From: Hemiscyllium ocellatum
Lineage: Eukaryota
DNA length: 64,000 nt
Direction: 5' to 3'
Assembly (NCBI RefSeq): GCF_020745735.1
Contig: NC_083453.1
Coordinates: 17,615,849-17,679,848 of the forward strand
The notes beneath the pieces are model-generated. The model was not told the origin of the DNA. It searched no databases and saw nothing but the letters and a program-made list of their open reading frames with translations. Positions within the stretch are counted from its first letter, which is position 1, and each line of letters opens with the position of its first letter. Positions 20,396 through 60,686 of the stretch are shown here, piece by piece. The translations under genes were made by a program, and so were the position numbers.

Positions 20396-20980
20396 AAAAT
20401 AAAAAAAGAATCTGGAAATCACAGCGGGGTCAGGCAGCACCCATGGGAAAGAGCACAAGCAAATCCTGAAAGTCAATCCACACGGGAACAGCAGACGGTG
20501 CTGATCACAAATCACCGGAGAAACTCAAGAGAGGGTTCGGCAACATCTGTTTGCGAGAGAAAGCAGGGTTCATCTTTCTCACCCTTCTTCAGAACTGCAG
20601 ACGAAACATGAAACTCTGTTTGCTCGCCACCAGAGGGCAGCCTGTCTCTACAGCACAAACACCATTCACGCCAGAGAATAGAGTCAGAAGTTTGGACCAC
20701 GGGGCTGAAATGAAATGGTAATTGCAATTCACACGGACATGAAGACAACTCCCTGAGCGCTCAACAAGCCGGTGGGGCTGACCCCCAACTGGCGAAGGAA
20801 GCAAACAAAACAGCGGTTGGCTCCCCGCAAACGGACCCGTTCCTCCTCCCCATCCCCCTTCCCAGCCCCCGGGGGCACAGGGTGGCGGCTTGTTCCTTCC
20901 CTCTGTCGGCTGCTTCATTCAGGGCGGCTCCTTGTCAGCTGCCAGTCCCTTGGCCAGCCCCCTCACACATCCCACTGGGA

Positions 20981-20988
20981 CATATAAG
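20981..20988 (+). promoter_or_regulatory. TATA box of keratin copy 1 (CATATAAG)
   Basis: ~115 bp upstream of the ATG, GC-rich context, identical in all four copies. Confidence 0.7.
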
Positions 20989-21097
20989 CAGCCGGGACAG
21001 CCCTTAGCTCCACCGAGCCGTTCAGTTTCGGAGTGTGCTCTCTCTCTCTGTCTCTGTCTCTGAGTGTGGGTCTGTCCACCCCCTGAACAACCTCGAA

Positions 21098-24000
21098 ATG
21101 TCAACGTCCATCACCACCATCACCAGCAGCAAAAGGAGCGGAGGGATAAGAACTGGAGGGAGCATGTATGGATCCGGGATGTCCTCCGGCCTCAATCGGT
21201 TGGGAAGCGGAGGGAGTTTTCAGACTTCCAGGCGTGCCCAAAGTGTGGTCCTGGGACCAACCCAGAGATTGTCAACCTCCCGATTCTCCACTGGCTCTCG
21301 GATGTCCAATATCGGATATAGCGGTGCTTTGGGCGGCGGCAGAATCAGTGCAATAGGAGGGGGCTCCAGCAGGATGGGCCTCGGGGGAATGGGGATTAGT
21401 TCCCAGGGACTGATCCAGAGAACCGCTGCCCTGGACCTGAACGCGCCTTTACCCCAAATCGACACCACTCAGAACATTGTCCGCTTGCAGGAGAGCCAGC
21501 AGCTCCAGGGACTCAACAACCAATTCGTTGATTTCCTTACCAAGGTAATGCTCAGTGGGGTCCAGGCGGGTGGGTTTCTAACCTGGGGGCTCTCTGTGGG
21601 GGGTCTTTCCTCTCTTGTCTTCACTGTCTCTCCATCTCACCCCCCCGCCAGGTTCGGCATTTGGAACAGGTCAATACTCAGCTGAGTATCAAACTGAAAC
21701 TTCTGCAGGATCAAGGCGAATACAAATCCAACATCGAGAGTATGTTTCAGTCCTACATTGACAATCTCAAGAACCAACTGGACACACTTCGCAAAGAGAA
21801 GGAGAGGTTCGATGCCGAACTGCTCCAAATGCAAGGGCTGGTCGAGGATTACAAGAGCAGGTGAGTGAGCTGCTGCCGAACTTGGTCCCGGATCGGTTCG
21901 GAGGCGGGTTCCTGTCGGAACCAAACCAAATGCCAGCTGCAGAATGAGCTCCCTGTGCCAAACAGACACAATGTGGGCTGGGGGAACGGGCTGCAGAGTT
22001 GTTCTGTCGGTGCTACTGAACTGCACACGGCCGGGCTGTTTGTCATCTGGGAAACCCCGGCAGCGGGACTGATCCGGCTCAGAACATGGTTTGACAGGGG
22101 GAAAGGGGGGTCGAGTTGGTGGCGGCATGGGGAGGCGAAGGATAGCGGGGACACAGACAACCAGGGAGTGTGATAGGGACGGGGCAGAAAGACTTGAGCC
22201 TCGGTAAAACAATCTCTTTCATTCCAGATACGAAGATGAAATCAACAAGCGCACAGAGATGGAAAATGAGTTTGTCCTGGTCAAGAAGGTGAATGTTACA
22301 AAGCCACAGGCTCCACTTCTCCGTTTGTGGGCACCTTTGGTCAGTTTTATCCAAGTCTTTTCTCTCTGTGCCCTTTAGGATGTCGATGACTCGTACATGA
22401 GTAAGGTGGAGCTGGAAGCGAAACTGGAAGCTCTGACCGATGAAATTGAATTCCTGCGGAGTATCTATGAAGAGGTAAATATCTGCCTTGTCCCACCAGC
22501 ACTCCTTTTCCCAATCTTCTCTCCATTCAAGTCTCATGCAATGTAACCCGAATGGTTTCCAATCACCTTCCAATCTTTCTCCCCGTGTCCTTCCCCTCCC
22601 CCCGGCCGTCTGTAGGAACTCCGGGAGCTCCAGGCTCAGATCCAGAATACATGTGTCAACGTGCAATTGGAGGGTGGTCCCAGGTTCAATGCGCAGGAGA
22701 TCTTAGACATGGCCAGGAAACAGTATGAAGCTTGTGCCCAGCAAGGCCGCGAAGATGCGGAAGTTTGGAAACGGACCAAGGTGAAGCTTCCTATTCTTTG
22801 GCCCATCTTTCTGACTCGGGCAGGAGCGTGAACTGTGGGACTAACTCGTTGTCAATATCTGTTTGCAGATGCAGGAACTGTCCATGGCGGCTGGACAAAG
22901 TGGCGATGATATCAGTGTGCTGAAGTCAGAGATAAGGCAGACAACAGAGCAGATCCGGAGAATGAATGGAGACATTGACAACCTGAAAAAAGAGGTAGGT
23001 ACAAGTCTAAAATCAATCTGAACATTGAAAAACACCTTTAACCACCTCTCTCTCTCCCTGTCTGTCTCTCTGTCTTCACTCCCTGTCTCACACCATCCAA
23101 AAAGCAATCATTCGTTCAGAAGCGATTGAAGGGTCGGCTGAATGCAGTCCATTTCTAACCGCCTTGGGGGGGGGGGGGGGGGGCGCGGTCTCACTGTTGT
23201 CTTTCCCGATGGGAATGTGTTGCTGGTCAGTCAGCAATCCACACCGTCCCGCTTTTCCCAAATCATGGGGAGGAGGGCGAGCCTTTTTGTTTTGCCAAAG
23301 TCTGGCTCGGAGCACTCGGGCTGAGCCTCAAACACTGAAGGAACTGACCAAATGAATCTTGATGTTCCTCAGCGTGTGAGACTGGAGGAAGCAATCCGGG
23401 AAGCGGAGGACCGCGGGGAGATGTCTCTGAAAGACTGTAAGCTTCAGATTTCGAAACTGGAAGATGCCATCTGCAAAGCTCAGCATGAACTTTCCGCACA
23501 ATGCAAGGAATACGAACACCTGATGGGCATCAAGCTGGCACTGGACATTGAGATCAACACCTACATGAAAATACTGGACACAGAGGAGACGAGGTAAGAT
23601 CAGGGGTACTTGCTAATCGCAGCCATCACATGGAGTCCTGTGCAGGCAAATTCCAGTCTGCACTTGCAGTTGACTGGGAACTCTGATCCCTAAGAATGGA
23701 ATGAGATGGAATGCAGGCAGTGTGAAGGTGATGGTGGTTGTACAGTCAGTGACTGACCTTCAGGTCCCACTGAAAGGTCAGGACCCCCACTCCTCACCCT
23801 CCAATTACTTGCTGGCATCTACTCCCTGTGGCAACAGTAACGACTGGGCACTTTGCCCAAGGGCAAGGGGCCTGACTGTGCCCATTCAGAAGTGTAGCCC
23901 AGGAGATGTGAGTGTCCCTGGGAGAGGGAGATACCTGAGGAAACAGAGGGAAGTCTGACTGTGATTTCCTGTCATTGCCTGTTATAATCTGAGAATGTTT

Positions 24001-59400: not shown

Positions 59401-60085
59401 CATCCAGCAAGTACAGAGCCAAGGTAAGAGAATTGCCCTTTTCTCCTTTGATCAAGAAAGTTCTGGGGAAGAGCTTAAAATCTAATTGAAAACTGGGAAA
59501 TTCTGGAACAGATGCTGGAAGCTCCTCATAAATGGAAATGCAAATAAATAAATTGTCTATTTCAAATTTGACCTTTGTCACTTCGTGCACGTTTGCTCAA
59601 GAGGCATCAAAGGTTAACCCAACCTCCTAATCAAGGTTTCTCCATTCACAAAGACTGCTAGTTTAGCTGTGTGTTTCCACAATCTTCTGTTAAAACAATA
59701 GTTTATTTTACTTGTCAATCCTGATTCTATGGTAAGTCACAAGATAAAACCTTATTTAATATTCATCCATGTATCAATTTGTATTGATAGTTCTTCAATT
59801 TGATTAACTGTAATAACCAATGTAGATTTTTAAAAGGTATTTTCTGAAGATGATCAGTTTTGACACAAGAGTAAACGGTTGTGTATTGAAGAGTGTTTCC
59901 TTTTGCTTTCAGGTGATTTTTCATCATTTGGTGCAATGTCATCTGGAATTACTCCATTTGCGGGTGCTAGTGCATATGAAACCTCCTTAACCTCTTCATC
60001 AAGCTTGAAACCTCCTCTGTTTGTGAAGAAAATTGAGACGAAGGATGGAAGGACAATTTCTTCATCTGTAACGCCCTTGAACTAG
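56454..60085 (+). CDS. type II keratin (keratin-8-like), copy 4, with distinct K8-type tail; 9 exons, 517 aa
   Basis: exons 56454-56906, 57014-57222, 57590-57650, 57741-57836, 57978-58142, 58231-58356, 58733-58953, 59374-59423, 59913-60085; last exon is phase 1 after ttttgctttcag and encodes [12 protein letters not shown]...[23 protein letters not shown]. Confidence 0.92.
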
Positions 60086-60680
60086 CGGGGAGGAAAGCAT
60101 TCTATCCAGTATTTGTCTCACATCTCAATACAAATAATTTTCATCTGTCATCCAAGCCTTCGATTTCAATTCTAATAATCCTAGTTTTGCATGTTTGGGG
60201 TACCTTCTTAAAATACTAACACTGGTGAACTTCCAAAGCTACAGTCCTTTTCAGCCTTCAGGCCTTTGTCAGTGATGAATTTGCCTCAATCTATTCACCT
60301 TCACAAACCGTATTGATCAATCTGCCATATACTTACACTACGTTATGTATAACTGTGACATGCAATATCAGTTGCTGTTTCTCAGATTATTTTTGGTTAC
60401 TTTACCCATTGCCTGACATTATAAGTTTTGCATCATGAAAAATCAAGTGTGTGCACACAATTTGGAATTAACTGGTGGGAATGGCTCACTAATTCTTTGT
60501 TGTCACTGACTAAAGTCTTGAAAGGTATCCAACTTCTAAAAGGCTCATCGTTGGGTTTAACAGGAAACAATTATTGGGTTCTTTAAGAAAGACACCAATG
60601 TTTTCTGTTCAGAACTGTTTCGTATTGTGTAACTTCTTGTACCAGATAATTTTCTTTTCATCACAGTCTGTGATATACTG

Positions 60681-60686
60681 AATAAA
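60681..60686 (+). terminator. polyadenylation signal AATAAA, copy 4
   Basis: ~600 nt after the stop, followed by a T/GT-rich tract; upstream context resembles that of 25020. Confidence 0.6.

Follow-up and report, generated by a model that had tools for sequence, protein, structure and literature searches.

The DNA described here is a stretch of 64,000 nucleotides (the window, with positions counted from its first letter) from contig NC_083453.1 of the epaulette shark, Hemiscyllium ocellatum, and it contains a tandem array of type II keratin genes. Comparison of the window with itself by BLAST gives a single tandem repeat at 20825-59433, amounting to 3.28 units: the first unit is 11,852 bp long, the second and third are 11,752 bp each, and a partial fourth unit stops at 59433. 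The array carries four intact genes of nine exons, all on the + strand and arranged head-to-tail (Table 1). A unit is built of a 3.25-kb block, about 1.7 kb with the last exon and 3′ untranslated region (UTR), a 24-bp minisatellite and a 3.4-kb spacer. The DNA upstream of copy 1 is unique, and copies 2-4 have the common spacer upstream. The genes end in two ways: copies 1-3 end in a tail designated T1 (...SQQGFI), and copy 4 has a different intron 8 and an exon 9 that encodes a different tail, T2.

Gene models and protein family

Nine-exon models were built for the four copies from reading frames and splice sites, and all of their introns are GT-AG. Exon sizes are 447 (copy 1) or 453, 209, 61, 96, 165, 126, 221 and 50 nt, followed by a last exon of 149 (T1) or 173 nt (T2); identical sizes recur in the sharks Stegostoma and Rhincodon and in the sawfish Pristis. 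Type II keratin genes canonically have nine exons, with inner exons of 61, 96, 165, 126 and 221 nt, and copies 1-4 have exactly this structure. The four products equal four H. ocellatum RefSeq proteins residue for residue (all named “keratin, type II cytoskeletal 8-like”), so the genes are already annotated.

The Pfam Filament domain (PF00038) is matched by exon 2 (expectation value, E, 1e-11), exon 5 (E 2e-7) and exon 7 (E 1e-18), and it is also precomputed for the identical RefSeq protein; a Pfam search with the head and both tails returned no family match. Against solved structures, exon 7 matches coil 2B of K5/K1 best (E 2e-15 to 5e-15), ahead of vimentin (2e-9) and the type I keratin K10 (5e-7), and by this comparison the array proteins are nearer to type II keratins than to type I or other intermediate filament proteins. 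The type II helix-termination motif, TYRxLLEGEE, is altered in the Hemiscyllium copies (at the end of exon 7, 23560-23593, and the equivalent sites in the other copies); it reads TYMKLLETEESR in Chiloscyllium, and TYKKMLEGEEAR (...LEGEE) is kept in Stegostoma. The remainder of the rod matches, and the copies are divergent type II keratins.

The proteins resemble KRT8 in being type II keratins with the canonical exon sizes, in their RefSeq “8-like” names and in a K8-type C-terminal motif (VKKIETxDG), which is found in copy 4 only and reads VKKIETKDG here against VKKIETRDG in rodent K8. They differ from KRT8 in the altered helix-termination motif and possibly in their surroundings. The krt8 gene has a head-to-head krt18 partner (10.1101/2020.05.06.063123); such a partner was not found here, and the 20 kb upstream of copy 1 hold no long open frame with keratin-like sequence, although the window is possibly too short to reach it. 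Orthology of the array genes with KRT8 is not established. In Pristis pectinata, a 453-aa (amino acid) Filament-domain gene lies on the opposite strand about 9.5 kb 3′ of the T2 gene, tail to tail with it (extract L011 23682-24118 (-)); with this length, it is possibly a type I keratin partner.

Table 1. Coordinates of the keratin array and its associated features in the window.
Feature	Position	Strand	Basis
Homogenised block, copy 1: 273 nt of promoter/5′UTR, exons 1-8, introns 1-7, first 10 nt of intron 8	20825..24073	+	Self-BLAST, edges read directly
Homogenised block, copy 2	32677..35916	+	Self-BLAST, alignment
Homogenised block, copy 3	44429..47668	+	Self-BLAST, alignment
Homogenised block, copy 4	56181..59433	+	Self-BLAST, alignment
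Gene c1, ATG to stop: 9 exons, 507 aa, tail T1; exon 9 at 24514-24662; AATAAA at 25020	21098..24662	+	Equals XP_060676847
Gene c2: 509 aa, tail T1; exon 9 at 36360-36508; private G>S at 33193	32950..36508	+	Equals XP_060676861
Gene c3: 509 aa, tail T1; exon 9 at 48112-48260	44702..48260	+	100% identical to XP_060676852
Gene c4: 517 aa, K8-like tail T2; exon 9 at 59913-60085; AATAAA at 60681-60686	56454..60085	+	Equals XP_060676853
24-bp minisatellite, ~150 copies, spacer 1	25746..29306	.	Tandem Repeats Finder
24-bp minisatellite, ~146 copies, identical to the copy at 49350-52815	37598..41063	.	Tandem Repeats Finder, unit comparison
24-bp minisatellite, ~146 copies	49350..52815	.	Tandem Repeats Finder
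Spacer, upstream DNA of copy 2; holds inverted reverse-transcriptase fragment 30181-30806	29307..32676	.	Self-comparison, Pfam
TATA-like box CATATAAGCAGCC, 117 nt before ATG, within shared block; also at 32833, 44585, 56337	20981..20993	+	Function from position only
Left flank of array, collinear with left flank of Stegostoma array	10190..15373	.	74-85% identity (Stegostoma extract L009 265-8278)

A shared block with two sharp edges

The blocks of the four copies are 3,240-3,253 bp long and at least 99.5% identical to one another; even copies 1 and 4, the two ends of the array, are 99.57% identical, with six mismatches and two gaps. The block begins 273 nt before each ATG and ends just after GTAAGAGAAT, 10 nt into intron 8. 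Past this 3′ edge, copies 1-3 and copy 4 are unalignable. Introns 1-7 and the 273 nt upstream are as identical as the exons, and identity over such a length is far beyond chance. A preliminary description of the window had claimed four genes near-identical from about 270 bp upstream of the ATG to 10 nt into intron 8, introns included, and both the self-BLAST and the four-copy alignment bear this out. Its account of the flanks (separate upstream DNA for copy 1, shared upstream DNA for copies 2-4), of the tails, of the N-termini and of exon 7 can likewise be read directly from the letters: copy 1 starts with MSTSITTIT and has GEM in exon 7, and copies 2-4 have another start and GDM.

The few differences within the block are distributed unevenly. 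Variants private to copy 1 stand at 21050, 21105, 21111 (a 6-bp indel), 21120, 23420 (E vs D) and 23692. Two sites are private to copy 2, another single site splits copies 1 and 2 from copies 3 and 4, and a poly-G indel splits copies 1 and 4 from copies 2 and 3. At the level of whole units, units 2 and 3 differ at three sites in 11,752 bp (0.03%) and their 3.5-kb minisatellites are identical; unit 1 differs from both by roughly 0.2-0.5% outside the minisatellite. With only 0.03% difference between units 2 and 3, the latest duplication would be very recent, and the near-identity of these units points to a very recent unequal exchange.

The same near-identity, minisatellite included, is also what would be seen if the copy number were an artefact of assembly, with one unit written twice as units 2 and 3 or a larger number of units collapsed. 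There are multiple points against this explanation. First, the three differences, one of them missense, mark units 2 and 3 as distinct. Second, unit 1 is clearly different, by 100 bp in length and by many differences in the minisatellite. Third, the independently assembled genomes of relatives hold even more copies (see below). An artefact of this kind is thus improbable.

Several repeats of other kinds accompany the array. The 24-bp minisatellite occupies 30% of each unit. A 53-bp satellite at 16997-19170 (41 copies, about 90% alike) lies 1.7 kb upstream of the left edge of the array. Left of the array there is also a reverse-transcriptase fragment at 4251-4946 on the - strand (Pfam RVT_1, E 3e-12), and 87% copies of it in the opposite orientation are present in every spacer (30181-30806, 41938-42563 and 53690-54315, + strand).

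Two old last exons

The two tails are only weakly similar. Their proteins share a weak match (SAFQTSLS in one, SAYETSLT in the other) that 21 of 2000 shuffles equal in score, and a global nucleotide alignment of exon 9 plus 3′UTR scores no better than shuffles. The ends of the two 3′UTRs do show a local 155-nt match of 61% (E 1.6e-4), with the AATAAA signals in register. Synonymous divergence between the tails is saturated. Comparisons of these sequences support the view that T1 and T2 are old paralogous last exons. Both tail types are expressed in other elasmobranchs, as transcript-like contigs and one cDNA (complementary DNA) attest.

The array in other carpet sharks

Relatives were reached in two steps. 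Exon 1, which encodes the low-complexity head, was a poor query against protein representatives and gave a single weak match of 122 aa; a stop-free frame around exon 1 led to a 371-aa partial protein that was then used as query, and the members of its cluster were listed. Chiloscyllium punctatum has, by protein, six T1-type and one T2-type sequences that share one species-specific body (the part of the protein preceding the tail). In Stegostoma tigrinum, eight T1 genes are followed by one T2 gene on the same strand of scaffold JAUUDR010000044.1, with gene starts from 13,694,865 to 13,801,175, at steps of 10.7 or about 16.1 kb. In Stegostoma, the identity between the last T1 gene and the T2 gene is 99.4% and stops 12 nt into intron 8; the DNA on both sides of this breakpoint consists of orthologues of the T1-side and T2-side introns of Hemiscyllium. 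On the 5′ side, the array begins 292 nt ahead of the first ATG, a position no more than about 40 nt from that of the Hemiscyllium edge (-273). Between the two species, the body, the T1 region, the T2 region, the spacer and the downstream DNA are all 73-80% identical, and the layout is therefore older than the Hemiscyllium/Stegostoma split.

The whale shark, Rhincodon typus, shows part of the same arrangement on NC_063372.1: a T1 gene, a gap in the assembly, then exon 8 and the T2 exon, with identity ending at +12 of intron 8. The gap is a run of 100 N where the T2 body would be expected (extract L008 18009-18108), and only the last part of intron 7, exon 8 and the T2 exon remain beyond it; because the gap replaces the T2 body, RefSeq lists only the T1 gene at this locus.

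Some features of the array are less conserved or harder to place. The genes of Stegostoma are spaced at 10.7 kb in four intervals and at about 15-16 kb, some 5 kb more, in the other four. The minisatellite was considered as a conserved hotspot of exchange and rejected, as the Stegostoma spacer lacks such a repeat; for the same reason, the 24-bp minisatellite is an addition of the hemiscylliids or of Hemiscyllium. A segment of the window 2 kb 3′ of copy 4 (62663-63440) matches the inter-gene spacers of Stegostoma at 77-82% (extract L007 5348-6101 and 16065-16818) and gives no match to what follows the T2 gene in that species. This segment is possibly a repeat element, or else a remnant of a former boundary between units. 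One Stegostoma RefSeq protein, of 630 aa, has a 114-residue N-terminal extension that translates the shared promoter/5′UTR (extract L002 10001-10342). The other copies start at the usual ATG, and the extension looks like an artefact of annotation.

The preliminary description had read the array in the order A - hybrid - hybrid - B. Taken as a recent event private to this lineage, this would mean that in an ancestor with two genes, A and B, unequal crossing-over near the 3′ end of the shared block made a hybrid gene that was then duplicated, and that the larger arrays of relatives arose independently from the same two-gene state. Several observations agree with such a history. Six variants, spread over the entire body as far as 23692, set copies 2-4 apart from copy 1; exon 7 of copy 1 keeps E, as in Chiloscyllium and Stegostoma; units 2 and 3 are 99.97% identical; and independent expansions from two genes would yield the same array edges. 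However, interior copies that are nearer to the last copy than to the first are also expected from ordinary turnover of an array. In addition, three or more T1 genes are present in each of the three carpet shark assemblies in which the array is resolved (three in Hemiscyllium, six in Chiloscyllium, eight in Stegostoma; the state of Rhincodon is behind the gap), so that an ancestor with multiple copies is at least as parsimonious. A recent private origin is therefore unlikely, though less so than an assembly artefact. With the array edges orthologous and the left flanks collinear, what had been called a hybrid is the repeating unit of an old array.

The pattern across cartilaginous fishes

The sawfish Pristis pectinata has two genes: one with a tail of the type labelled “alpha” lies 17 kb upstream of one of T2 type. 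Between -409 and +85 of intron 8, a span of 3,911 bp, these genes are 99.39% identical; further on they are unalignable. DNA-level edges thus come from four species (Hemiscyllium, Stegostoma, Rhincodon in part, behind its gap, and Pristis), and the order of the genes, with T2 last, was read in the same four. By protein, the pattern is seen in ten further taxa: Carcharodon, Cetorhinus, Heterodontus, Pristiophorus, Heptranchias, Scyliorhinus torazame (one gene per tail type), two Mobula species, Rhinoraja and the chimaera Callorhinchus. The T1 tail of carpet sharks is likely to be orthologous to the alpha tail of other orders. Gene number ranges from 2 to 9 across species, a variation between species.

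In 13 species, T2-type and alpha-type proteins were compared over body and tail separately: the bodies are 98.1-100% identical and the tails 25-48%. The two parts of the protein also give different trees. In the body tree, the T2 body stands beside the alpha bodies of its own species in 13 of 13 cases, and the tail label needs 13 changes, the maximum; in the tail tree, the tail label needs two changes, and none of 500 shuffles gave a number as low. Synonymous divergence (dS) of the body tells the same story at silent sites, with values of 0-0.0095 for the genes of one species, 0.51 for Hemiscyllium compared with Stegostoma and 1.13 for Hemiscyllium compared with Pristis.

Strong purifying selection on the keratin rod might be thought to account for bodies so alike, since keratin rods are conserved and exon 8 is nearly invariant among sharks. 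The bodies, however, evolve fast between species: the ratio of nonsynonymous to synonymous divergence (dN/dS) between Hemiscyllium and Stegostoma is about 0.39-0.40, which is high for a keratin rod. Moreover, the within-species dS is near zero against 0.51 between carpet sharks, and the introns and the 273 nt upstream are as identical as the exons. Because introns and silent sites are equally identical, the identity of the bodies does not come from selection on the protein; the intron and synonymous-site data refute that explanation and leave it with practically no probability.

Base composition changes along the genes as well. The content of guanine plus cytosine (GC) is 0.50-0.53 in introns 1-7 against 0.31-0.44 in intron 8 in every species read, and at third codon positions (GC3) the body has 0.60-0.63 and the tails have 0.33-0.50. 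This step fits biased gene conversion, though it is not specific to that process.

The chimaera Callorhinchus milii adds a separate observation. Four of its proteins (P0165, P0169, P0173 and P0174) combine two heads with two tails in all four combinations around a near-identical body. Some of them come from transcript assemblies, and the combinations could exist as genes or could be chimeras made in assembling near-identical transcripts.

A probable old module under concerted evolution

The array in the window is probably the form taken in the epaulette shark by an old type II keratin module with two tails, which is found across cartilaginous fishes and has been subject to long-running concerted evolution with a fixed 3′ edge. 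Within a genome, the near-identical segment starts some 270-410 nt upstream of the ATG and takes in the first 10-85 nt of intron 8; outside it, the rest of intron 8, exon 9 and the 3′UTR have diverged along separate orthologous lines. The characteristic marks of concerted evolution are present: paralogues within a genome are closer than orthologues at silent sites and in introns, sequence outside the tract follows orthology, and copy number varies between species.

The mechanism that would maintain this state is ongoing non-allelic homologous recombination, in the form of unequal crossing-over and gene conversion. The array has the repeat form (body + T1 + spacer)n + body + T2, in Hemiscyllium at present with three T1 genes and one T2 gene. 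Given this form, unequal exchange would alter the number of T1 genes while T2 stays single, and last where the order was read, and interior genes would necessarily join spacer-type upstream DNA to a T1 tail. All copies would have the same rod and head and a common proximal promoter, the T1 and T2 proteins would differ only in a tail of about 50 residues, and copy number would set the dose of T1 protein. The sawfish pair suggests that copies were converted, or that genes were gained and lost in cycles.

Seen against this background, the preliminary description was right in kind where it proposed two paralogues, homogenised bodies and unequal exchange: the tails are old, the body dS is 0 and the interior copies show the structure expected. 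A recent private event is not supported, in view of the orthologous array edges and of the 6 + 1 and 8 + 1 genes of Chiloscyllium and Stegostoma. The two-gene A + B state that the description expected in relatives is present in the sawfish and in Scyliorhinus torazame, with one gene of each type, but not in the nearest relatives, which have larger arrays; relatives thus do not lack separate A and B genes. Its further suggestion that tail T1 had come under the regulation of gene B is weak, as the TATA-like box at -117 and the 273-nt proximal promoter are common to all four copies. Since the proximal promoter lies inside the shared tract, that idea can apply only to distal elements.

Various points weigh against the interpretation as an old module. 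DNA-level proof comes from four species only, and the other nine rest on RefSeq/UniRef protein models; the T2-last order was likewise read only in Hemiscyllium, Stegostoma, Rhincodon and Pristis. Copy numbers taken from single assemblies could be wrong, and polishing can over-homogenise near-identical copies. The T1 tail of carpet sharks sits on a long branch (1.28) of the tail tree. Finally, the GC step could be the ordinary 5′-to-3′ gradient of vertebrate genes.

A broader proposal, put forward tentatively and with some doubt, is that the arrangement of one body with two tails predates the split of chimaeras, sharks and rays, with the tract ending at or just inside intron 8 throughout, and that it has been favoured by selection. 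Identical rods and heads would keep both keratins fitted to one type I partner during the rapid drift of the rod (dN/dS about 0.4), and the tails would be free to specialise. The array would then be a genomic substitute for alternative splicing of the last exon, in which the number of copies adjusts the dose.

The local finding is ordinary in kind, in that the genes are annotated and the homogenisation of arrays by unequal exchange belongs in textbooks. Its depth and sharpness are what deserve attention: the last exons have diverged past saturation and their type is still recognisable across sharks, rays and a chimaera. The module offers a clean natural system for studying the time over which a protein-coding gene can remain subject to concerted evolution. 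It likewise allows one to ask why an exchange tract stops where it does, which is at 10-12 nt of intron 8 in the three carpet shark genera and at 85 nt in the sawfish, and whether the function of keratin tails is separable from that of the rod that they share. There are also two practical warnings. Phylogenies of these K8-like sequences will show species-specific “duplications” that are conversion, and assemblies from short reads or transcripts can shuffle heads, bodies and tails.

Comparison with known systems

A full-text search of the literature found no description of concerted evolution in shark keratins, and the closest parallels come from other gene families. In the human HBA1/HBA2 pair, the 5′ flank and coding body are near-identical through gene conversion and unequal crossover, the 3′ end has diverged, and copy number varies between chromosomes. 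The keratin array resembles this pair in its tandem paralogues, its homogenised 5′ flank and body, its divergent 3′ end and its exposure to exchange that changes copy number. It differs from it in two respects. First, the divergent 3′ part of the shark genes includes a coding exon, so their products differ in the C-terminal tail. Second, the keratin state spans the cartilaginous fishes, not one order, and reaches nine genes (in Stegostoma).

The human red/green opsin genes form a head-to-tail array in which unequal homologous recombination gives rise to changes in copy number and to 5′/3′ hybrid genes. The likeness lies in the head-to-tail array and in unequal recombination, by which one gene contributes its 5′ part and another its 3′ part to a joined gene. 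The opsin hybrids, however, are polymorphic and have crossovers at many positions, whereas the interior genes of the shark array all have one junction, a fixed one that is orthologous across at least three genera of carpet sharks.

Tandem genes for KRTAP1 keratin-associated proteins offer a third parallel. They are reported to undergo concerted evolution via recombination, such that copies within a genome are more alike than orthologues between species, and the title of the paper announces contrasting evolution of coding and flanking regions (bioRxiv 10.1101/282418). The keratin genes are like them in their tandem arrangement and in the closeness of paralogues compared with orthologues; the KRTAP1 genes differ in that they encode hair matrix proteins rather than intermediate filaments and are those of mammals only.

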